From positions 62,001-126,000 of the IMG/VR virus record IMGVR_UViG_3300027759_000046: a stretch of DNA of 64,000 nucleotides. The stretch is one strand, 5' to 3'. Below the pieces are notes generated by a model that saw only the letters and a program-made list of their open reading frames with translations, was not told the origin of the DNA and searched no databases. A program made the translations under genes and the position numbers. Every line of letters starts with the position of its first letter. Position 1 is the first letter of the stretch. Shown in pieces: positions 2,429-63,876 of the stretch.

Positions 2429-4411
2429 TTAGTTTTGTGCTCTTCTTTTGAGAGCGTCTAGATAGCTATTTGAATAACCTCTTAGACTTTCGTTTACTTG
2501 TACTAACGATATGTAGCCCTCTTTACCTTGGCTTTCGTTAATTGTTTGATTATTTATATTATTTGCTTGCGCAATTCTTTCATTTACTGTTCTAAGATCG
2601 CGAGAATCCCAGAATGCTTTAGCTTGATAAGGAGTGTTGATCACTTGAGTAGAAGCTTGAGCAGCCATCCAATTACGTTCAGCATCATTCATACTTTCAA
2701 ATACTGTTTTGTATTTTTCTGGCATGAAACGAACGTAAGCTGGAGTGTTTTCCGTTTGTTTATTCATTACTGATTCCATGATATTGATAACTTCACCTTC
2801 AGTAAAGAAGATAGCGCCTCTCATAGTTTCAACGATTGCTGTTTTAGTATCAGCATCCAAAGCATAGAATTTTTGCTTGTTAGATTCACTAAGAAGTTTC
2901 AAGAAAGGATATTTGTTTTCAAGAACTGCATTCGCTGAATTAGATTTGATATGAGATAAGATACCGTCAACTGCGTTAGCTAATTCATCAACTCCTGAAG
3001 CATCTGTAACTTCGTAGCTTGCACTTTCGTTAAGTTTCTTAACGTCAGATAACAATCTGCGAGCTTTGATATTTGTGTTTGGAGTAATCTTTTCATTCAT
3101 TGTTTCAGCGATGTACTCAGAATAAGCAATTCCTTTCTGTACGTTTTCGCCAAGATACTCAGAATATTTGATTGCTGCATCTAGGTTTTCAGCTAAGTAG
3201 TTTGCAAATTTAATACCTTTTTCAGCATTCTCTGCAACGTATTCAGCGTATTGAATTCCTTTGTCAACGTTCTGAGCTAAGTAGTTTGAGTAAGCAATAT
3301 TCTTCTCAACGTTTTCAGCAACATACTCGCCGTAATTGATAGATTGGTTAACTTTCTCTCCTAGATAATCAGAGTATTGAATGTTTTTCTCAACTTTTTC
3401 TGCTAAGTAATCACCGTAATCGATAACGTTGTTAACTTTTTCTGCAACATGCTCAGTATATCCAATACCTTTATTTAGCATGGTTGAAAGGTAGTTTGAA
3501 TACTCAACCATTTTTTCCATTTCACTTGCTAAGTAATTTACATACTCAACTAGTTTTCCAGTTTCTGGTGATTCATTGCTATTTTCATTAAGAGAGCGAA
3601 TTCCAGCGTTGTTTTTCGAAAGGTTTTCTTGAAGAGCATCGAATTTCTTCTTAACCAATTGCGAATACTGGTTCATTTCTTCTCTTGATACAAAGTCATT
3701 AGCCATTTGCTTATTATTATTTTGTTGTTTAGTGATTTCAGAATTATTTATTCTATAGATCTTTACAGAATCTTCAAATGAGAAGCTTTCTGATATATCT
3801 GTTAACTTATTTGTGATGGAAGTTGTCTTAATGCCGTCCAAAGACTCAAAAAGTACAGAAAAATTGTCCCTTAAGCTCTCAGAAACCTGAGTTAGGGAAG
3901 CTTGTGAGAATCCTGGTTCAGCAACGATATCGTAAGTAAAGATTTTTTGAATCTTAACGACTCCGCTCTCGTTTACGTTACCTGCTGCTCTTGATGAAGT
4001 TGAGATTGTACAACCTGACTCAACTAGAGTCTTTGCAATACGACCACATGGAGTATCAAGAACTTTAAGTTTAATACGAACAGTATTTGAAGGTTCGTCA
4101 TAAGTAAGAGCTTCAACCACGTGAGAAACGTTCTTTAGGGAAACGTCAAAACTTTGTGGATGGTCTAACTCTCCGAATAACTGACCCTTTTGGATCTTCT
4201 CATTTAGATATGAAAGATGAGGCAAGTACTCTTGCTTCTCATAGATACGATTGTTCTCGTTCTTTTGTCCAAAGACTGCACAAATACCCTCAAGGATAAT
4301 TGAGCCATCGTTTGATTTTGAAACGTTCAACGCTTCGTTAACTCGCTCGATGATGAATAATTGACTATCATCGAAGCCAGTCTTTAGTAAGTTTGTTTTA
4401 GCGCTAGTCAA
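2429..4411 (-). CDS. Prohead core protease (gp21-like) fused to a scaffold-like repeat region
   Basis: LEGICAV..KNENNRIY, GELDHP, SSRAAG, TYDIVAEPGF motifs; long helical C-terminal region; TTG start. Confidence 0.9.
   Translation of the reverse strand: MTSAKTNLLKTGFDDSQLFIIERVNEALNVSKSNDGSIILEGICAVFGQKNENNRIYEKQEYLPHLSYLNEKIQKGQLFGELDHPQSFDVSLKNVSHVVEALTYDEPSNTVRIKLKVLDTPCGRIAKTLVESGCTISTSSRAAGNVNESGVVKIQKIFTYDIVAEPGFSQASLTQVSESLRDNFSVLFESLDGIKTTSITNKLTDISESFSFEDSVKIYRINNSEITKQQNNNKQMANDFVSREEMNQYSQLVKKKFDALQENLSKNNAGIRSLNENSNESPETGKLVEYVNYLASEMEKMVEYSNYLSTMLNKGIGYTEHVAEKVNNVIDYGDYLAEKVEKNIQYSDYLGEKVNQSINYGEYVAENVEKNIAYSNYLAQNVDKGIQYAEYVAENAEKGIKFANYLAENLDAAIKYSEYLGENVQKGIAYSEYIAETMNEKITPNTNIKARRLLSDVKKLNESASYEVTDASGVDELANAVDGILSHIKSNSANAVLENKYPFLKLLSESNKQKFYALDADTKTAIVETMRGAIFFTEGEVINIMESVMNKQTENTPAYVRFMPEKYKTVFESMNDAERNWMAAQASTQVINTPYQAKAFWDSRDLRTVNERIAQANNINNQTINESQGKEGYISLVQVNESLRGYSNSYLDALKRRAQN
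3091..3553 (-). repeat. 11 tandem 14-aa repeats (xIxYxEYLAExxxK) in the protease-scaffold
   Basis: LVEYVNYLASEMEK through GIAYSEYIAETMNE, counted in the translation. Confidence 0.9.
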
Positions 4412-4431
4412 CTTGTATAAGACTTTTTTGT

Positions 4432-4439
4432 TATTTATA
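4432..4439 (-). promoter_or_regulatory. T4-type late promoter TATAAATA upstream of protease/capsid operon
   Basis: Exact TATAAATA about 20 nt upstream of the gp21-like start. Confidence 0.8.
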
Positions 4440-4477
4440 TAGCGACCTATCGGTTAAAATAGACAGCTATACTAACA

Positions 4478-28905: not shown

Positions 28906-28920
28906 AATTATCCGACATGA

Positions 28921-30450
28921 TTGTTAACTTTTAAACTTGCTTCAGACAAACAACATTTACAGCTAATAAGTCACGACACCAAAGGTGAATTAAAGGATCT
29001 GCAACTCTATTTTAGAAAGAGACAAAAAGGCTATCACTTCAATAAATTATATCAGCGTAAACTGTGGGACGGTTACGATAAATTCATCGATAAGGACCTT
29101 AAAATCGGTGTGGGTCTGTGGAAAGAGATCCTAAATTTCGGAAAGAAATACGATTACGAAATTACAATTGAAGGCCTCGACGATCTTCTAAATCTATCAT
29201 TTACAAAGGATCAATTGGAAAAATTTGCGTCAGTTTTACTTGACGGAACTGGTATTGACGTTCGTGATTATCAGTTGGAAGCAGCTCATCGAGCTCTAAA
29301 ATACAAGTTCTGTTCCCAAGAGCTTGCAACCTCAGCGGGTAAGACCCTAATCCTATTTTTATATCTTTCTTTTCTTAAACGTAAGGGCGTAATTTCCAAA
29401 GAAAAAAAGGCCTTAATTGTTGTTCCGAATATCTCGTTAGTAGGTCAAACTGCTGAGAAATTTGAGAAAGATTATAAAACTGGACTGCTTGATTGGACTG
29501 TTCTGCAAATAGGCGGATCAAACAAGTATTCAGATAAACTATTCGAGAGCTCAGATCTAGTTATCTCAACCTACCAGAGTCTAAAGAACAAAGATGCCTC
29601 ATTCTTTGAGAAATTTAGCTGCCTATGTATTGACGAGGCTCACACAAGCCGAGGTAATTCAATTCGTGATATTCTACTTGGCTGCAAGAACGTTGAGTAC
29701 AAATTAGGACTGTCTGGTACCATTAAAATTGAGGAAGAGTACTCAGATTTCTTTAAGATTCAGGAGTTCTTAGGCCCATTAAGCATGGTGCTTAAGTCAA
29801 ACTTCCTGATTGAACAACAGCATTCGCCAAACGTCTACATTAAAATGCTATCTCTTAAGTATCCCGAGTCCGAGCCATTCGTTAAGAAATATTTGGAGCT
29901 TAGGGAACGTGGCCAAGCTGGCAAAGAGATGTTTACTGCTGAACGCGAGTTCATTGTGTCATATCAACCTAGAATTAACTTTATTGCAAGCATGTGCAAG
30001 AAACTAGAAGGCAACAAGCTCATTCTGTTCATTAACGTTAAGGATCAGTACGGTCAACGCATTTGCGATAAGATTCTTGAGGAGAATCCCAAGGCATATT
30101 ACATCGACGGTGGCGTTGGTGATAAGGATCGTAGCGATTACAAAGAGAACATGGAAAAGGGTCAGGGTGTTGTGCTCATTGCCTCTTATGGAACCTTCTC
30201 AACCGGTATTGACCTTAAGAACGTAAATCATATTATCTTTGCAGAGAGTTATAAATCCGAAATTACAATTCGTCAATCTATTGGTCGAGGAATGCGTAAG
30301 TTAGCTGGAAAACATCAAGTCGTTGTTTACGATCTAGTTGACGATCTAGCCGGTTATATCGTGAAACACGGTCAAGCCAGAGAAAAGATCTACAAGAAAG
30401 AGCAATTCATTCTTTCAAAACACTCATTTGATTTAGGCAAGTTCCTATAA
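28921..30450 (+). CDS. uvsW: UvsW-like SF2 DNA helicase
   Basis: VRDYQ, ELATSAGKT, IDEAH, GLSGT, TFSTGIDL, QSIGRGMR. Confidence 0.92.
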   Translation: MLTFKLASDKQHLQLISHDTKGELKDLQLYFRKRQKGYHFNKLYQRKLWDGYDKFIDKDLKIGVGLWKEILNFGKKYDYEITIEGLDDLLNLSFTKDQLEKFASVLLDGTGIDVRDYQLEAAHRALKYKFCSQELATSAGKTLILFLYLSFLKRKGVISKEKKALIVVPNISLVGQTAEKFEKDYKTGLLDWTVLQIGGSNKYSDKLFESSDLVISTYQSLKNKDASFFEKFSCLCIDEAHTSRGNSIRDILLGCKNVEYKLGLSGTIKIEEEYSDFFKIQEFLGPLSMVLKSNFLIEQQHSPNVYIKMLSLKYPESEPFVKKYLELRERGQAGKEMFTAEREFIVSYQPRINFIASMCKKLEGNKLILFINVKDQYGQRICDKILEENPKAYYIDGGVGDKDRSDYKENMEKGQGVVLIASYGTFSTGIDLKNVNHIIFAESYKSEITIRQSIGRGMRKLAGKHQVVVYDLVDDLAGYIVKHGQAREKIYKKEQFILSKHSFDLGKFL

Positions 30451-45443: not shown

Positions 45444-46508
45444 TTATACCTTTATTTTTTGAGAAGCGGTCATCATGCACTCCATTAAGTACTGGTGACA
45501 TTCATTTAAGTAAGATTCGTAGTTCTGAGTCTCGTCTGGTGTCATATCGTGTTTGTGAGCTTCATGAATAAGAACTTCTTCACAAATTCTCTTGATCGCC
45601 TGTTTTGCGCTATCTGATAAGCCTGGCACGTAACTTTCTGGCATTGCTGACCAACACTCATTTAAGAATTGATCGAATGAACCGGATACTCGACCTTCTG
45701 CGAGTTTTTGGTCGTATGCATGAAACGGCACTGATGCGCCTGGATGTATAGTATTGATTGTGTAGCCATGCTCTCTGCTAGTGTATCTGTCCCAGCTAAT
45801 ACCTGTAACATCGTCTAGTGGAATAATTTCACCATTGTCTGCGGTAATTTCTCCAGTCCTTAGATCTAACTGATTAGTTGGATTTGATACCTTATATTGT
45901 TCGCGATACGCATTGAACGTAATCGGTTTCTTTGGACCGTCTTCCCAGTCCTTAATTAGATGAGAGAACACACGGTTATAGTAATTAGGGTCATTACGTT
46001 TCTCTCGGTCAGTCTGCATTGGCGTTTTATTGTAAATTGAATGACTTGGTGCACCGCTTGCTGAGTCAACTTCAGTTGCCTCAATTGAATTGTCCTCAAT
46101 GCTCTCAATCTCCTCGTCTCCACCGAATTTGCTAACTTCTACCTGAATTCGGTATTCAACTCCTTCATGTTCGCCAACTAACTCCGCGTAACCCATACCT
46201 TCGTCCCATTCAGTATACTCAGTGTCTAAATCAAAATCAACAATAGCCTCTTCTCCCCAAACTGTTAGAATTTTTATGAAAGTTTCGCTGTCCGTGATTC
46301 TACGCACTTTGTAACCAGCTGCTTGAATTTCAGCCAGGTCCTCTGGCTTATTACCCATGATTTTGATAACACCAGGTTTACCGGGTTCAGCTAAACCTAG
46401 TCCTTTAAGCCTTTTAAAATTGTCTTGATGTGATTTTGGATTGGCTCCCATGGAGGTAGCCTCTTTATCCATGAATTGAGGAAGTCTTCTTTTGCCGAAT
46501 TTGCCCAT
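45444..46508 (-). CDS. Hypothetical acidic protein, putative head cargo
   Basis: RLKGLGLA motif; internal SFDQFLNE and YESYLNE; TATAAATA upstream. Confidence 0.55.
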   Translation of the reverse strand: MGKFGKRRLPQFMDKEATSMGANPKSHQDNFKRLKGLGLAEPGKPGVIKIMGNKPEDLAEIQAAGYKVRRITDSETFIKILTVWGEEAIVDFDLDTEYTEWDEGMGYAELVGEHEGVEYRIQVEVSKFGGDEEIESIEDNSIEATEVDSASGAPSHSIYNKTPMQTDREKRNDPNYYNRVFSHLIKDWEDGPKKPITFNAYREQYKVSNPTNQLDLRTGEITADNGEIIPLDDVTGISWDRYTSREHGYTINTIHPGASVPFHAYDQKLAEGRVSGSFDQFLNECWSAMPESYVPGLSDSAKQAIKRICEEVLIHEAHKHDMTPDETQNYESYLNECHQYLMECMMTASQKIKV

Positions 46509-46533
46509 TAGTATAACCCTTTTTTTGTAGGGT

Positions 46534-46541
46534 TATTTATA
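46534..46541 (-). promoter_or_regulatory. T4-type late promoter TATAAATA
   Basis: Exact match about 25 nt upstream of the 46508 start. Confidence 0.75.
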
Positions 46542-55141: not shown

Positions 55142-55441
55142 TTACATTAATTCTGCGTTATCGGAGTCAGTAGGTTCTTCTTCGATAGCTGGTTGTTCTT
55201 GATTGTCTGCCGGCTCTTCTGGGTTGTCCGCAGGTTCGTCCATCATCATAAGATTAGGTTCTTCGCCCTGTGGCATTTCGTTGCCCATTGGCTCTTGTGC
55301 TGGTGCAGGCAATTCCAATTGACCTTGACCCATGTCAGGTCCGTCCATGTGAATGTTAGCATCAACCTCAGGTTGATTGTCCAATCCTTGTGTTACGAAA
55401 TCTTCAAAGCTAAGAATTCTACTTTTGTTTAGATTATCCAT
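55142..55441 (-). CDS. Acidic low-complexity protein, putative head protein
   Basis: RILSFEDF then an E/P/D-rich tail; GATAAATA upstream. Confidence 0.55.
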   Translation of the reverse strand: MDNLNKSRILSFEDFVTQGLDNQPEVDANIHMDGPDMGQGQLELPAPAQEPMGNEMPQGEEPNLMMMDEPADNPEEPADNQEQPAIEEEPTDSDNAELM

Positions 55442-55479
55442 TTTTAAGTAGGTAATTTTGGTTTATTTATCTTTATTGG

Positions 55480-55506
55480 TGGAACAATTTGAGCCTCGCT
55501 CTGGTC
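55480..55506. repeat. Left arm of an inverted repeat flanking 55512..56309
   Basis: TGGAACAATTTGAGCCTCGCTCTGGTC; 13-nt core exactly complementary to 56359..56371. Confidence 0.8.
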
Positions 55507-55511
55507 AAATG

Positions 55512-56309
55512 TTAATTAGCAAGTGGTGTTCCGCAGCTAGGGCAGAACTGCCAATTACTCTTTTTTATTCTGGTGCCGCAACCTGTGCAATAAGATCGGA
55601 TTTCACCAATTTCTACAGGTTTTTGACTCTCAGGTAGGATCTTGTATTGATACACTGAGCAGGTCCATGAATTGAACGTGCCGTAGCTATTAGTAAATCC
55701 TTGATCTGATTTAGCGCCCTTTTCAACACGGCCAGTTTCTAAAGATCCAGCAACCGGTGCTGATGCACTACTGGTCAAAGTTAGATTTCCGACAGCAGAG
55801 TTGGTTGAGCAGTACAAAGTATTGACAGTAGACCCACCATACACAGGGTTAGCTGTCCAGGATGGAGTAGAATACGGCATGTACTGTATCTGTGAGTCTA
55901 TTTCAGAATAGAAGTCAACTTTAATGTTGCCATTAAAGAAAACAGCACTCTTAGCTGCCTCAGAGTCTTCAACTTCATACGTTGAGAATTTAAACTTACG
56001 ATCCTCATCAATGAATCTCTCTAAGTAAACTCTTTGGCCAGGATTCACAATGATTCCGCCGCCTGAGATGACGCGGCCGTTGACACTGATCTTAGCTAGG
56101 ACTCTTACTGTTTTTGGGTTGAATAATTCTATCTCAAAATGAGATTCGTCCTTTAGATAGACAGTTGTTCCGCTATATAATCTTAGACGATTTTTGCTCT
56201 TTGTAATGTGAGCTTCAGGTTTGGGGTCATAGTTCGAATACGAGATTGAACTGCCCACGTTTAGGGTGTTTGTTTGTTGGTACATAGTAGTTATGTTTTT
56301 TTTGCTCAT
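55512..56309 (-). CDS. Hypothetical protein with beta-rich N-domain and C-terminal double zinc ribbon
   Basis: FEIELFNP..YLERF..FKFSTYEV; CTGCG..CPSCG. Confidence 0.75.
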   Translation of the reverse strand: MSKKNITTMYQQTNTLNVGSSISYSNYDPKPEAHITKSKNRLRLYSGTTVYLKDESHFEIELFNPKTVRVLAKISVNGRVISGGGIIVNPGQRVYLERFIDEDRKFKFSTYEVEDSEAAKSAVFFNGNIKVDFYSEIDSQIQYMPYSTPSWTANPVYGGSTVNTLYCSTNSAVGNLTLTSSASAPVAGSLETGRVEKGAKSDQGFTNSYGTFNSWTCSVYQYKILPESQKPVEIGEIRSYCTGCGTRIKKSNWQFCPSCGTPLAN

Positions 56310-56355
56310 CTCTTTGTAACCCTATTGATTACTCAAAGGCCCGCGGACCCGAGAC

Positions 56356-56380
56356 GAACAGAGCGAGGCTCTATGTTCCA
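56356..56380. repeat. Right arm of the inverted repeat, in a structured 5' leader
   Basis: GAACAGAGCGAGGCTCTATGTTCCA. Confidence 0.8.
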
Positions 56381-56412
56381 TCTTTATTATACTTGATTAT
56401 TTATTCAAGTTT

Positions 56413-56489
56413 TGGTACTCTCGGAGAGACTCGAACTCCCAACCCCTTCGTCCGTAGCGAAGTGCTCTATTCCATTGAGCTACGAGAGC
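56413..56489 (-). tRNA. tRNA-Arg(ACG), CCA encoded
   Basis: Cloverleaf; anticodon arm CTTCG-CT ACG GA-CGAAG. Confidence 0.95.
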
Positions 56490-56495
56490 ATTTAG

Positions 56496-56569
56496 TGACC
56501 CCGACAGGATTCGAACCTGTGACCTACTGCTTAGAAGGCAGTTGCTCTATTCCGCTGAGCTACGGGGCC
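56496..56569 (-). tRNA. tRNA-Arg(TCT)
   Basis: Anticodon arm ACTGC-CT TCT AA-GCAGT; no CCA. Confidence 0.95.
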
Positions 56570-56574
56570 ATTTG

Positions 56575-56655
56575 TACCTCGGGTGGGAATCGAACCCACA
56601 AGCATTTTGCACTCGATCTTAAGCCGAGCGTGTTTACCAATTTCACCACCGAGGC
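56575..56655 (-). tRNA. tRNA-Leu(TAA)
   Basis: Anticodon arm CTCGG-CT TAA GA-TCGAG; variable arm; no CCA. Confidence 0.93.
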
Positions 56656-56656
56656 G

Positions 56657-56733
56657 TGGGGTGACAGAGGGGAATCGAACCCCCGATCTTCTGAACCACA
56701 ATCAGACGCTTTAACCAACTAAGCTACCGCCAC
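56657..56733 (-). tRNA. tRNA-His(GTG), CCA encoded
   Basis: Anticodon arm TCTGA-TT GTG GT-TCAGA; C73. Confidence 0.93.
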
Positions 56734-56735
56734 AG

Positions 56736-56805
56736 AGGTCAGTGTTGGAATCGAACCAACTCCGTGGGATTTGCAGTCCCACCGGCCTCCACGACCGAAC
56801 TGACC
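56736..56805 (-). tRNA. tRNA-Cys(GCA)
   Basis: Anticodon arm TGGGA-CT GCA AA-TCCCA; U73; short D arm. Confidence 0.9.
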
Positions 56806-56809
56806 TAAT

Positions 56810-56844
56810 AAAAAATGGGGCTTAAACTTGCGCTTAAGCCCCAT
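56810..56844 (-). terminator. Intrinsic terminator upstream of the tRNA operon (putative attenuator)
   Basis: 11-bp stem ATGGGGCTTAA/TTAAGCCCCAT plus U-tract ending about 5 nt before tRNA-Cys. Confidence 0.85.
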
Positions 56845-56974: not shown

Positions 56975-56982
56975 TATTTATA
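56975..56982 (-). promoter_or_regulatory. Late promoter TATAAATA (plus a TATATT -10-like element at 56947..56952) upstream of the leader/tRNA operon
   Basis: Exact motif; TATATT lies 6 nt before the leader ATG. Confidence 0.65.
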
Positions 56983-60024: not shown

Positions 60025-61761
60025 TTATTTATATTCAACCTTGACTCTAGACCTGAACTCTGGTGGGAATTGAGTACCTGCGCTCTTAAATAGATCTGCA
60101 AAACACCCATCTATTAAGTAGGTCACAGCCCAATCTTCTGGGGTTCGGATTGACCGACCGACTCCTTGTAGGACCGAAACCGAGGTCTTCCAGTTATACC
60201 ATTGCTGTGAATAGTTTAATTTGGCCGCAACGTACTTGTCACCTAGGTAAGGGTACGGAACCTTTAGAAATATTTGAAATCTTGATAAGTCGTCAACTAG
60301 GTTTAGGCCTTCAAGTAGAGAAGGCCCCATTGCAACTGTGCCACGATTCTTCTTCATCTTCTTCAGCATCTTCTCCTTTTCCTCAGAGCCTTTGTACAGC
60401 AGAACTCTCTTTCTGACATCCTTAGGTAGAGCCTTCCAAATCTTTTGGCCCAACTCATAGGATCCAGTGTGAATGATTCCTGATTCTGTCTTATGCGTGT
60501 TTAGGATCTCAGTTACTCGAGCAACCGCCCAATCCAGATTGTCAGCTAGGAATCGGGTCGACAGTTTCTTGCCAGGATAAAATATGATTGGCGATCTGTC
60601 CCACTTGAAATGACTCTCAATCTTAAAGTATTTTGCATCTTTGATTCCATGATTTCGCATAAAGTCCTGAGTACCTCCCATCGTCGCTGTCATTAGCAAT
60701 TTGAATCCAAATTTATTGAAGAAGTGCTTGTGTAATAAGTAGTACTCATCGATACAATTGAACGTGATTGACGTTTCTCCAGGATTCTTAACCATCTTAT
60801 GGACTCCAGTCTTTTCAATGATATCACTATAGTCTTCTAATTTGCAGTGCACGTCTTTTAACCAGTCAGTCAAGTTAAAGGTTGCTAACCAGTCTTGTGG
60901 AACCGAGTCTTCTCCGAATTCTTTACCTGCAACTTCTCGAATATCAGCAGTCTCTTTAACCAGACCTCCAAGTATTTTAGTGATCTCCTTTAGATGAGCT
61001 AAGATAACGGCTGGTGCCTCTTCTGCATAGACCTCCTCAATGTTCTTCTTAAGACCCATTAGATTTACGTTAGGGATCTTAAGTCCAAGATCGCCAATGT
61101 TCTCAAGAATCTTTTCAACCTTCTTGTGAATTTCATGTGATACGATTGGGCTAAAGTGGCTCTGTACAATATCCAATAGTTTGTGAGCCTCATCACAGAC
61201 AACAAAATCTCTCTGTGGAAAAGGTGAACCTTTACCTTTACCTTGCTGTTGCTGCTCAACGTAATTTCTTTGAATGAGAGCGTAAGGATATGTGAGTAGT
61301 GCAATTGGCGATTTGATCGCCTTTTTACGAGAGGTTAAGTAACCGCATTGCTTAAAACACGGAAGAGCCTCAGCTGATTCGTATGAGACTCCTTTGCTCT
61401 TGCACTCTCCGACTGAAAATCTTTCTCCATTGACTGCACACGTGTAATTGTCAACTCCTTTAATATTACCCCAATTCCAGAGTTGCATGCTACGAAAGTC
61501 CTTGACGTATTGATCGTGTAGAGCCAAGTCAGATGCAAGGATATAGCCACGATTTCCTTTAAAAGCCAAAAAATCCGCAAACAACATTGCGATCACAGAC
61601 TTACCTGAACCAGTCGGGGCGTCCAATAGGAATACTCCATTTGAATCTTCATCGTATGCTTCTATGATTGCAAGGATAGCCTCTTTTTGTTGAGGTCTAA
61701 ACTCGAACATTGGATGCTTACCCTTAACAAACTGTTCAAATTCGGCCTTTAGTTTACTCAT
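60025..61761 (-). CDS. DinG/XPD-family helicase
   Basis: RPQQ, DAPTGSGKS, four-Cys cluster, CDEAH, MTAT, EGLNL, QGVGRSIR. Confidence 0.88.
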   Translation of the reverse strand: MSKLKAEFEQFVKGKHPMFEFRPQQKEAILAIIEAYDEDSNGVFLLDAPTGSGKSVIAMLFADFLAFKGNRGYILASDLALHDQYVKDFRSMQLWNWGNIKGVDNYTCAVNGERFSVGECKSKGVSYESAEALPCFKQCGYLTSRKKAIKSPIALLTYPYALIQRNYVEQQQQGKGKGSPFPQRDFVVCDEAHKLLDIVQSHFSPIVSHEIHKKVEKILENIGDLGLKIPNVNLMGLKKNIEEVYAEEAPAVILAHLKEITKILGGLVKETADIREVAGKEFGEDSVPQDWLATFNLTDWLKDVHCKLEDYSDIIEKTGVHKMVKNPGETSITFNCIDEYYLLHKHFFNKFGFKLLMTATMGGTQDFMRNHGIKDAKYFKIESHFKWDRSPIIFYPGKKLSTRFLADNLDWAVARVTEILNTHKTESGIIHTGSYELGQKIWKALPKDVRKRVLLYKGSEEKEKMLKKMKKNRGTVAMGPSLLEGLNLVDDLSRFQIFLKVPYPYLGDKYVAAKLNYSQQWYNWKTSVSVLQGVGRSIRTPEDWAVTYLIDGCFADLFKSAGTQFPPEFRSRVKVEYK

Positions 61762-61792: not shown

Positions 61793-62506
61793 TCACTTCC
61801 AATAGTTTTGGTCTTTATAGAAATAGGATTCGTTGTTGCGGTTTAGCCAGTTTCTAAAGACTAGCTGTACCATTTTAGAATAACCATATCTCTTGAATCG
61901 ACGATTGTCTTGTGTAATTAATTCAGGAACTAATTTGAAGTTCGCAGGCTTAATCTTTCTGCTCAGTAACCAATCTTCGCTTTGATGAGCCCTTTCGTCG
62001 AATCCGCCAAGCTCGTTAAATATAGCTCTTCGCATTAGCATAAATCCGCCAATTGCGAATGGTCTGGTCTTGGACAGGTACCATGTAACAATTTCATTTA
62101 GTAAAAATATTAGCACAGCGCGAATGTCTAGCTCACCTTTATACTTTGGATAAGTACCAAGCATTGCGTAATTGCCAGTATACAAAGAGGCAATTGACTC
62201 TCTAATAACATCTCGGTGAGTGAATGTGACATCTGCATCCAAGAATAATAAGTATGGAGTATCTGCTAACTTCGCACCAGCATTTCGACCGACAGCTGGC
62301 AAGCCACCTTTAATTACTTCAACGTTAAGGTCCAGCTGTTCTGATAACTCTTTAATTATGTTGAGAGTTGAATCAGTAGATCCAGCGTCTGCGATAATTA
62401 CTCTAACTCCGTCTATTCCATTTTGTCGTTTAATATGTCTAAGAGTTCGGCCAATATAGGCTTCCTCATTGAGGCATGGAATTACAATAGTTAAAGATTC
62501 TTTCAT
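61793..62506 (-). CDS. GT2 family glycosyltransferase
   Basis: IVIPCLNEE, DAGSTD, GRNAGA, FLDAD, GGFDE..SED. Confidence 0.9.
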   Translation of the reverse strand: MKESLTIVIPCLNEEAYIGRTLRHIKRQNGIDGVRVIIADAGSTDSTLNIIKELSEQLDLNVEVIKGGLPAVGRNAGAKLADTPYLLFLDADVTFTHRDVIRESIASLYTGNYAMLGTYPKYKGELDIRAVLIFLLNEIVTWYLSKTRPFAIGGFMLMRRAIFNELGGFDERAHQSEDWLLSRKIKPANFKLVPELITQDNRRFKRYGYSKMVQLVFRNWLNRNNESYFYKDQNYWK

Positions 62507-63794: not shown

Positions 63795-63798
63795 TTTG

Positions 63799-63876
63799 TA
63801 CCCTCTGAGAGACTCGAACTCTCACCCTAAGACTAGATCCTAAGTCTAGCGCGTCTACCAATTCCGCCAAGAGGGC
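63799..63876 (-). tRNA. tRNA-Leu(TAG)
   Basis: Anticodon arm CTAGA-CT TAG GA-TCTAG; canonical T arm. Confidence 0.93.

Follow-up and report, generated by a model that had tools for sequence, protein, structure and literature searches.

Complementary and co-varying leader and trailer arms suggest a closed-loop mRNA in an uncultivated freshwater jumbo phage

We found that a gene of an uncultivated freshwater jumbo phage has a 5' leader and a 3' trailer that are complementary to each other, and that the two arms change sequence together in hundreds of related phages, so that the mRNA most likely closes on itself next to a previously undescribed, strongly conserved three-way-junction RNA in its leader. 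The analysis started from an earlier note, made from the sequence alone, on a stretch of 64,000 nucleotides from the IMG/VR record IMGVR_UViG_3300027759_000046 (positions 62,001 to 126,000), which we call the window. The note described a zinc-ribbon gene (55512..56309) bracketed by inverted repeats with a 13-nt perfect core, local hairpins with complementary CUC and GAG loops in both arms, and two further leader hairpins, and proposed mRNA circularisation, RNase III processing, autoregulation or recombination sites of an invertible or mobile cassette as possible roles. The observation proved to be correct in sequence and position, apart from the assigned start codon. Of the proposed interpretations, only a part was supported, namely the end-to-end pairing on the mRNA, while we found no support for an invertible or mobile cassette.

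An inverted repeat around a single phage gene

The sequences TGGAACA-ATTT-GAGCCTCGCTCTG (55480-55503) and CAGAGCGAGGCTC-TA-TGTTCCA (56359-56380) were found exactly as described, and a repeat search reported the core as arms of 16 nt at 55491-55506 and 56356-56371 with 94% identity. The 13-mer occurs only at these two places in the window, even with two mismatches allowed. However, a perfect 13-nt inverted repeat within 2 kb is not unusual by itself, because the window contains six such seeds and Markov shuffles gave a mean of 4.4. Because the additional 7-nt arm extends the complementarity, the gene ranks first among 81 window genes for complementarity of its flanks (score 32, next 22, median 14), but chance was only rejected after the comparison with relatives described below. 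A repeated genome-wide element was also ruled out, since the arm pattern matched at no more than two sites in each of the 24 IMG/VR contigs it hit, always at the flanks of this gene where both arms were recovered. The features of the locus are listed in Table 1.

Table 1. Features of the locus in window coordinates, in order along the predicted mRNA
Feature	Position	Strand	Description
tRNA cluster	56413-56805		Upstream of the gene
Promoter-like motifs	56386..56405	-	AATAAATAA (56405-56397) and TATAAT (56391-56386); place the predicted 5' end of the mRNA at about 56380
5' arm	56356..56380	-	UGGAACA-UA-GAGCCUCGCUCUG-UUC; can also form a small local hairpin (GAGC-CUC-GCUC)
Three-way-junction RNA motif	56300..56362	-	P1, 56360-56351 with 56312-56303; P2, 56350-56347 with 56340-56337; P3, 56332-56328 with 56320-56316; conserved junction nucleotides (UUGA, AAA)
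Linker	56286..56302	-	A-rich, unpaired, between P1 and the start codon
Coding sequence	55512..56285	-	257 aa; predicted beta-sandwich domain, disordered Ser/Thr/Asn-rich linker, C-terminal C4 zinc ribbon; function unknown
3' arm	55480..55506	-	GAC-CAGAGCGAGGCUC-AAAU-UGUUCCA; starts 5 nt after the stop codon, within a possible local hairpin (55511-55483)
Promoter-like motif of the next gene	55463..55470	-	ATAAATAA; about 10 nt after the 3' arm; next gene at 55441..55142

The encoded protein belongs to a family with homologues in Lak and other huge phages and at least 484 in IMG/VR jumbo and huge phages. Searches of Pfam, NCBIfam and PHROGs yielded only the zinc ribbon (PF13240), and a sequence profile search of the PDB gave only weak zinc-ribbon matches. 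The AlphaFold2 model had a mean pLDDT of 77.8, and structural comparison by Foldseek against the PDB and by VIA-align returned only generic Ig/MSP-like sandwiches with Z values of 6.4 or less. The function of the protein is unknown.

A conserved three-way junction in the leader and the probable start codon

The two further leader hairpins listed in the note (GGUC-CGCG-GGCC and GUAAUC/GGUUAC) are real and both covary, but they represent helices P2 and P3 of a three-way junction which had been missed. RNAalifold predicted 19 pairs for this motif, 16 of them with compensatory changes, and 93.2% of the cells were paired against 69.4% in shuffles, with a covariation value of 0.718 against 0.266 that was exceeded in none of 500 shuffles. 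A covariance model built from the motif scored 70.9 bits (E 1e-17) in the leader, which was its only hit in the window, and the junction is found upstream of nearly every homologue. Among the distant homologues in Lak and LR7565xx phages, which we had examined first and whose AT-rich flanks gave ambiguous scores for the arms, the model detected the junction at the loci L001, L003 and L006 (numbers with L denote loci of the family), but not at L002 or the Lak loci. A comparison with Rfam (release 15), proposed in the note as a check, showed no matching family: only tRNAs passed the gathering thresholds in the window, and a permissive scan of 55400-56420 (E≤10) gave only chance-level hits far below the gathering scores. 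Searches of the literature for a description of the motif found nothing relevant.

The reading frame 55512..56309 exists, but the ATG at 56309 lies inside helix P1 and is followed by an in-frame stop codon in several relatives. The ATG at 56285 (MYQQT...) is conserved and is most likely the true start codon. The linker preceding it is A-rich in all clades and unpaired in the folds.

Co-variation of the leader and trailer arms

The note had named the absence of complementary flanks in homologues as an outcome that would speak against the pairing, and we compared leaders and trailers across the family. In the clade of the window, both arms are identical in IMG/VR relatives whose proteins are only 51-60% identical, although the few arm differences within this clade are uncompensated (C>A in L036, G>A in L093). 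From 241 loci in which both the three-way junction and the stop codon were placed, we obtained 104 unique leader/trailer pairs, 65 of which have a leader arm matching the reverse complement of their own trailer. In the direct orientation, only 3 of the 104 pairs reached the score threshold. The exact cores cluster into 14 groups, which hold about 12-15 recognisably different arm sequences, including GAGCCTCGCTCTG, TTAGAGCCTGAC, TTAGAGCCTCTC, AAAGCCTCGTGTGGC, AAAGGTGCCTTTC, AAGTGGTGCCTAAC, CTGGGGAGCC, TGAAACCTTGTTA, TGTGTTAACTC, TCTCACTTTGTT, GGAACCTCAC and TATAGCGCC. All sit at fixed positions, as the leader arm ends -5 to +6 nt from P1 and the trailer arm starts 3-13 nt after the stop codon.

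Columns anchored on the shared GCC showed three to four different bases per position, each matched in the partner; for example, column -1 contained A/A 23 times, T/T 11 times and C/C once without any mismatch. The paired fraction was 0.747 against 0.575 ± 0.016 when trailers were shuffled, and no shuffle out of 2000 exceeded 0.639. The grouping itself was less straightforward: single-linkage clustering of the leader arms collapsed nearly everything into one class because of shared promoter and P1 sequences, and clustering on the cores still merged classes sharing GAGCC. For the same reason, the cross-class control is not clean (137 of 2966 pairs scored 20 or more). Own-versus-cross energies calculated by RNAduplex separated arm-bearing from arm-less loci, but because duplex folding over-extends into AT-rich promoters, we switched to symmetric DNA alignments. 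Transition mismatches between the arms were G.U-compatible on the sense strand 16 times and of the A.C type three times (binomial p = 0.004; about 14:3 after merging one repeated event), a bias at the RNA level, although it could partly reflect transcription-associated C>T and A>G mutation on the non-template strand.

Three large clades of the family lack the trailer arm and carry an ordinary terminator instead, so the pairing is dispensable. A natural experiment is provided by L038, the nearest relative lacking a trailer arm, which keeps the stem of the 5' hairpin but has a changed loop.

Predicted folds and transcript boundaries

Both the minimum-free-energy and the centroid structure of the predicted 906-nt transcript (55476-56381, minus strand) contain the end-to-end helix. 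Whole-mRNA folds of 17 representatives of different arm classes all contain an end-to-end helix of 12-28 bp, whereas four of five arm-less controls do not. [quoted passage not shown] The local hairpins described in the note exist but are weak, folding at -6 to -8.4 kcal/mol with z-scores of -1.1 to -2.1. Their complementary CUC and GAG loops are real, but we read them as part of the full arm complementarity, perhaps as a nucleation point, and not as an independent kissing system.

The predicted 5' end rests on promoter-like motifs. The ATAAATAA(C/A) and (T)AGTATAAT motifs recur upstream of many window genes, and in relatives a TATAAATA-like motif ends -4 to +9 nt from the start of the arm in most loci. 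TATAAATA is not enriched overall in the window, but judged against our own ATG-only gene calls, about four of its six copies lie just upstream of genes or the tRNA cluster on the matching strand, and the looser ATAAATAA motif is clearly associated with gene starts. The transcription start site is inferred from these motifs only; no transcript ends, structure probing or expression data exist, and no sigma-70 promoter was found at the arms. At the other end, a consensus scan found no intrinsic terminator at 55476-55515, and the trailer hairpin is followed by AAAUUGUUCCACC instead of a U-tract, while canonical terminators do exist elsewhere in the window. Where relatives carry a canonical terminator (types L047 and L102), the trailer arm lies upstream of it. 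The promoter-like motif of the next gene behind the 3' arm is arranged in the same way in relatives.

A closed-loop model and alternative explanations

We regard RNA-level pairing of the two UTRs as more likely than not the correct explanation. In this view, the mRNA starts just downstream of a T4-late-like promoter motif, and its first ~25 nt pair with the segment behind the stop codon by 7 + 13 + 2 bp around a 2x4-nt internal loop, closing the ~900-nt message into a panhandle. The long-range helix would abut P1, so that the stop codon (5 nt from the helix) and the start codon (about 20 nt from P1) are anchored at the same junction. The analysis itself shows that the complementarity exists, that it is maintained by co-variation of both arms across many clades, that it is thermodynamically dominant, and that the three-way junction is a real conserved structure. 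Everything on its role is inferred: closure probably protects or regulates the message; it would protect both mRNA ends from 5'-end-dependent and 3'-exonucleolytic decay, and may also couple translation to message stability, because a terminating ribosome would open the P1-proximal part of the helix, and stop and start codons are held close together. Co-transcriptional folding and translating ribosomes may prevent the thermodynamic structure from forming in vivo, read-through transcripts from the tRNA cluster, which is not separated from the gene by a terminator, would not start at the arm, and the G(A/T)GCC centre shared by the arm classes could instead reflect a sequence-specific factor. The weak local hairpins may be co-transcriptional intermediates, whose complementary loops help to nucleate the exchange. 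There was no evidence either way for covalent circularisation.

A further, unlikely reading goes beyond this model. The co-evolving ends, stacked on a dedicated three-way-junction RNA, might hold the stop codon next to the start codon such that terminating ribosomes are handed back for re-initiation and translation itself gates the opening of the protective helix. This would be a phage-encoded, purely RNA-based analogue of eukaryotic mRNA circularisation, built into one highly conserved gene of jumbo and huge phages.

Cleavage of the paired flanks by RNase III, excising a defined mRNA from a longer precursor such as read-through from the tRNA cluster, is possible in the clade of the window only and seems unlikely overall. 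The duplex of about 22 bp with its internal loop corresponds to about two helical turns, no terminator separates the tRNA cluster from the gene, and icaR shows that a 5'/3'-UTR duplex can be an RNase III substrate (PMC3868564). In several other clades, however, the conserved duplex is only 11-14 bp long (TTAGAGCCTGAC, CTGGGGAGCC, TGAAACCTTGTTA), which is short for RNase III, so that the length expected of a processing stalk is seen in one clade without being conserved and the point stays undecided. Moreover, because a promoter-like motif sits immediately upstream of the arm in most loci, a precursor is not required.

Equally doubtful is the possibility of two independent local hairpins, a 5'-terminal stabiliser and a 3' terminator or stabiliser, which do not pair with each other and resemble each other because both are bound by one factor, perhaps the zinc-ribbon protein for autoregulation, an activity that was not assayed. 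Each arm can fold locally, a 5' hairpin precedes the three-way junction even in clades without a trailer arm, L038 keeps the hairpin stem after losing the trailer arm, and some trailer hairpins are followed by U-runs (L063, L073). As RNA hairpins, however, the arms present complementary and not identical loops and bulges, and one RNA-binding protein would not see the same surface on both. In addition, the trailer arm is not self-complementary in the TTAGAGCCTGAC and CTGGGGAGCC classes, yet still matches the leader, loops and unpaired flanks co-vary between the arms, and the local hairpins are far weaker than the duplex.

Least likely is a DNA-level element, in which the arms are two copies of one protein-binding or recombination site in inverted orientation, such as an operator pair or DNA loop, an invertible switch or the terminal inverted repeats of a mobile cassette, although inverted repeats of about 20 bp bracket a single gene, the shared G(A/T)GCC centre of many arm classes might represent a co-evolving protein site, and close protein relatives can carry entirely different arm pairs (L048 versus L050), as if both sites were swapped together. 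Inversion had been named in the note as a point to check; the leader elements lay upstream of the gene in the sense orientation in the 20 window-clade leaders read directly and in the 241 loci mentioned above, and no inverted configuration was seen. Because assemblies show the majority form only and loci were oriented by the gene, this design could hardly have recovered inverted forms, and neither read-level data nor all window ORFs were screened, the latter for recombinase domains; the called neighbours carry glycosyltransferase, helicase and ClpB-like AAA domains. No conserved target-site duplication was seen, since the 8-9-nt direct repeat flanking the arms in the window (AATAAAGAT) is part of the promoter-like motifs and differs in spacing and sequence in relatives. 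Finally, a double-stranded DNA site would not produce strand-asymmetric, G.U-compatible mismatches, the arms always lie between the predicted start site and the terminator and inside the predicted transcription unit, and distant homologues in Lak phages lack the arms.

Significance and comparison with known systems

Intramolecular 5'/3'-UTR pairing is documented for only a handful of bacterial mRNAs (icaR, hbs, hok), which are the nearest known cases, each resting on experiments in one species. Here, the evidence is supplied by evolution, because about 12-15 different arm sequences are each matched by a partner about 900 nt away across hundreds of uncultivated jumbo and huge phage genomes, which is unusually clear phylogenetic support for long-range pairing of mRNA ends in the prokaryotic world. 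The pairing comes with a candidate new RNA family, the strongly covarying three-way-junction leader, which is tied to a protein family shared by freshwater jumbo phages and other huge phages of 460-640 kb. The system needs only a 900-nt RNA with compensatory mutations to be tested, and it could show how phages stabilise or meter a message late in infection.

[quoted passage not shown] There is no sequence or structural homology to hbs, and the helix described here involves the extreme 5' end, is up to ~22 bp long, sits next to a three-way junction and is supported by co-variation across many phage clades rather than by experiment, with the RNases involved being unknown. Processing stalks cut by RNase III flank rRNAs and phage T7 early genes, and the complementary sequences on both sides of our gene could likewise form a duplex of about two helical turns with an internal loop. 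In the phage family, however, no cleavage data exist, the duplex length is not conserved across clades (11-28 bp), and a dedicated promoter-like motif sits at the 5' arm.

The tac/fbi fold-back of the hok mRNA in type I toxin-antitoxin systems is discussed in PMC9841398. The very 5' end of the full-length hok mRNA pairs with its 3' end, giving a compact, stable, closed molecule, but hok encodes a small membrane toxin controlled by the Sok antisense RNA and by 3' trimming. The phage gene does not fit this type, because its product is a soluble-looking protein of 257 aa with a predicted beta-sandwich and a zinc ribbon, no antisense gene or toxin features were seen, and the Rfam scans found no antisense or toxin-antitoxin RNA. 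In S. aureus icaR (Ruiz de los Mozos et al. [quoted passage not shown] The 3' UTR here is very short, and such pairing with the ribosome-binding site was not found, because the A-rich region before the start codon is unpaired in all folds and the arm lies 70-95 nt upstream of the start codon without covering the ribosome-binding region.

Inverted repeat flanking the zinc-ribbon gene

To examine the reported inverted repeat around the zinc-ribbon gene, we first re-read both arms in the sequence and found them exactly where the earlier note had placed them, so that its observation is confirmed. An inverted-repeat search extended the core to 16 nt at 94% identity, and the 13-mer occurs nowhere else in the 64 kb window, even with two mismatches allowed. 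Taken alone, the core proves little, because the window contains six perfect 13-nt inverted seeds within 2 kb, and Markov shuffles give 4.4 on average. With the extra 7-nt arm, the gene ranks first of 81 window genes for complementarity between its flanks (score 32, next 22, median 14), but the decisive evidence is comparative and is presented below.

The window belongs to a ~253-kb IMG/VR contig from a freshwater metagenome, and all genes around the locus are on the minus strand. A cluster of five tRNA genes ends 33 nt upstream of the 5' arm, and four of the five are found in the same place in a relative (locus L009). Many window genes are preceded by an ATAAATAA(C/A) motif, which lies 15–30 nt upstream of many start codons and resembles the T4 late promoter TATAAATA, while others are preceded by a (T)AGTATAAT motif, suggesting two promoter classes in this phage, although exact TATAAATA is not enriched overall in the window. 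Both motif types precede the 5' arm, and an ATAAATAA motif follows the 3' arm by about 10 nt and serves the next gene. Canonical hairpin-plus-U terminators exist elsewhere in the window, including a strong one just upstream of the tRNA cluster, but none lies at the arms or between the tRNAs and the zinc-ribbon gene. How the tRNAs are transcribed, and whether they read through into the gene, was not established. Our gene call, which admitted only ATG starts, left three long gaps in which the sequence looks like coding sequence (non-ATG starts or interrupted genes).

Features of the locus and of the surrounding window (positions in the window unless another sequence is named)
Feature	Position	Strand	Sequence or remark
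3' arm	55480-55503		TGGAACA-ATTT-GAGCCTCGCTCTG
5' arm	56359-56380		CAGAGCGAGGCTC-TA-TGTTCCA
Promoter-like motif preceding the 5' arm	56405-56397		AATAAATAA
Promoter-like motif preceding the 5' arm	56391-56386		TATAAT
Three-way junction, covariance model hit	56300-56362		70.9 bits, E 1e-17
Helix P1, 5' strand	56360-56351		UGUUCGUCUC
Helix P1, 3' strand	56312-56303		GAGAUGAGCA
Open reading frame as listed	55512..56309		start ATG at 56309
ATG within the 3' strand of P1	56303-56309	-	probably not a start codon
Coding sequence from the most likely start	55512-56285	-	257 aa
tRNA cluster	56413-56805	-	Arg-ACG, Arg-TCT, Leu-TAA, His-GTG, Cys-GCA
Separate tRNA	63798-63876	-	Leu-TAG
Canonical terminator upstream of the tRNA cluster	56815-56844	-	13-bp stem plus a U-run
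Examples of the T4-late-like motif	60026-60033, 56975-56982, 55463-55470, 46534-46541		ATAAATAA(C/A)
Gaps in the ATG-only gene call	3707-4477, 28906-29784, 45812-46536		
Homologue with SHOCT-like tail (L006, huge phage LR745206)	2968-3990 of L006		…ILTDEEFSDKKSELLSKI

Encoded protein

The open reading frame described in the earlier note is real, but its start codon is probably misplaced. In relatives, the listed ATG is followed by an in-frame stop (ATGAGCAAAAAATAA) and in several of them opens a 4-codon mini-ORF (MSKK*), whereas the conserved N-terminus is MYQQT/MYLNQ, and the start is therefore most likely the downstream ATG. The protein has a C-terminal C4 zinc ribbon (PF13240), and AlphaFold2 modelling on a 59-sequence alignment (mean pLDDT 77.8) predicted a beta-sandwich built from residues 20–130 and 180–220, a disordered linker at 133–175, and the ribbon. 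PDB searches returned only generic Ig/MSP-like sandwiches and no solved structure with a specific match. A search of a library of viral protein models returned uncharacterised proteins of eukaryotic giant viruses, nudiviruses, nimaviruses (Wsv390) and iridoviruses (ICP-18) at E 1e-10 to 1e-4. The best match of the window protein in this library is named SHOCT domain-containing, and the homologue of huge phage LR745206 (locus L006) likewise ends in a SHOCT-like helical tail instead of the zinc ribbon. No function could be assigned to the protein. Homologues occur in Lak megaphages and in huge phages of 460–735 kb, and at least 484 are present in IMG/VR, but no cultured phage carries the gene.

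Covariation of the two arms

We compared the flanks of relatives at increasing distance. An exact-pattern scan of IMG/VR found the window-type arms in 24 contigs (25 stretches), at no more than two sites per contig, and where both arms were recovered, they flank this gene. These relatives have proteins only 51–60% identical to that of the window, yet identical 20-nt arms. For a wider sample, three protein-profile scans gave 240 loci, and we located the leader junction and the stop codon in 241 loci, counting three GenBank huge-phage loci as well, which reduced to 104 distinct leader/trailer pairs. In 65 of these 104 pairs, the leader segment just upstream of helix P1 matches the reverse complement of the segment just after the stop codon, whereas only 3 pairs reach the same score in the direct orientation. 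The matched cores cluster into 14 groups, which hold about 12–15 recognisably different arm sequences, including GAGCCTCGCTCTG, TTAGAGCCTGAC, TTAGAGCCTCTC, AAAGCCTCGTGTGGC, ATAGAGCCCTTCTA, AAAGGTGCCTTTC, AAGTGGTGCCTAAC, TGCCTTTTACC, CTGGGGAGCC, TGAAACCTTGTTA, TGTGTTAACTC, TCTCACTTTGTT (huge phage LR756500), GGAACCTCAC and TATAGCGCC. Their positions are fixed, with the leader arm ending -5 to +6 nt from P1 and the trailer arm beginning 3–13 nt after the stop.

For a column-by-column test, we anchored 35 distinct arm pairs on their shared GCC. Individual columns then show three or four different bases, each matched in the partner arm; column -1, for example, has A/A 23, T/T 11, C/C 1 and no mismatch. 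The paired fraction is 0.747, compared to 0.575 ± 0.016 for shuffled partners, with a maximum of 0.639 in 2000 shuffles. On the protein tree, arm-bearing loci occupy many clades, while three large clades lack a trailer arm and have a plain terminator instead. The sister proteins of the IMG/VR loci L048 and L050 (99/96 support, short branches) carry completely different arm pairs, GGGGAGCCA versus ATTAGAGCCTGAC, so both arms were replaced together, perhaps by recombination of the UTR modules.

Evidence for action at the RNA level

Four points favour the RNA over the DNA level, one of which, that no inversion was seen, is given with the alternatives below. Transition differences between an arm and its partner are G.U-compatible on the mRNA strand in 16 distinct contexts and A.C-type in 3 (p = 0.004; about 14:3 after merging one repeated event), whereas a double-stranded DNA site predicts symmetry, although transcription-associated C>T and A>G bias on the non-template strand acts in the same direction. 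The arms lie just downstream of the promoter-like motif and, where a canonical terminator is present (the types represented by loci L047 and L102), upstream of it. The MFE and centroid structures of the 906-nt window transcript contain the 7 + 13 + 2 bp end-to-end helix, whereas the local hairpins are worth only -6 to -8 kcal/mol. MFE folds of 17 representatives of different arm classes all contain a 12–28 bp end helix, and four of five arm-less controls do not.

A three-way junction in the leader

The two further leader hairpins described in the earlier note are P2 (GGGU/GCCU, loop CCGCGG) and P3 (GUAAU/GUUAC) of a conserved three-way junction, and they are enclosed by a 10-bp helix P1. RNAalifold on 47 diverse leaders predicted 19 pairs, 16 of them with compensatory double changes. 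Of the alignment cells, 93.2% are paired against 69.4% in shuffles and 40–48% when partners are slid, and the covariation is 0.718 against 0.266, exceeded in 0 of 500 shuffles. A covariance model built from this alignment finds one copy in the window. It also finds the junction upstream of the homologue in three GenBank huge phages and in 79 of 80 and 73 of 80 further loci, but nothing in the Lak loci or in the homologous locus L002 at E<=1. The Rfam search, which had been suggested as a check, returned no matching family. Junction nucleotides are conserved (U27, G29, A30 and A49 of the aligned window sequence), suggesting a specific tertiary fold or a binding partner, although no partner was identified here. 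The 5' strand of P1 overlaps the outer stem of the local 5' hairpin proposed in the earlier note. In the folded leader, only the small GAGC-CUC-GCUC hairpin remains, and the first ~9 nt are single-stranded unless they pair with the trailer.

The nearest relative of the window clade without a trailer arm (locus L038, IMG/VR_UViG_3300009185_003358) has lost this arm, and the next promoter follows the stop codon directly. Its 5' hairpin keeps the stem AGAGC/GCUCU, but the loop has changed from CUC to GCUU. This suggests that the local stem has a role of its own, and that the loop and 5' tail are constrained only by the partner arm.

Interpretation and comparison with known systems

The interpretation given in the earlier note was partly supported, in that its end-to-end pairing is backed by strong comparative evidence, whereas its cassette and inversion readings are not supported. 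The complementarity of the arms, their covariation and the conserved junction come directly from the analysis, while the following mechanism is our inference. In this view, the long-range helix abuts P1, with the stop codon 5 nt from one strand of that junction and the start codon about 20 nt from the other. We propose a closed-loop mRNA whose paired ends are shielded from 5'-end-dependent and 3'-exonucleolytic decay, although what the closure does is open. A terminating ribosome would open the P1-proximal base pairs and be released close to the start site.

Of the alternatives, RNase III processing remains possible for the ~22-bp duplex of the window clade, but it is probably not the general role, because several clades keep only 11–14 bp. 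Inversion had been named as a point to be checked, and no inverted form was seen: the 20 window-clade leaders continue into the junction rather than into the 3' end of the gene, and all 241 loci have the junction upstream of the gene in the sense orientation, which is weak evidence because assemblies show only the majority form.

[quoted passage not shown] The nearest parallels are the 14-bp 5'/3'-UTR helix of B. subtilis hbs, which modulates RNase Y cleavage (PMC5737220), the icaR 3'-UTR/SD pairing, which creates an RNase III substrate (PMC3868564), and the hok tac/fbi fold-back. None of them is homologous to the phage element. The defining feature of icaR is absent because the arm does not cover the ribosome-binding site, and that of hok is absent because there is no toxin or antisense RNA.
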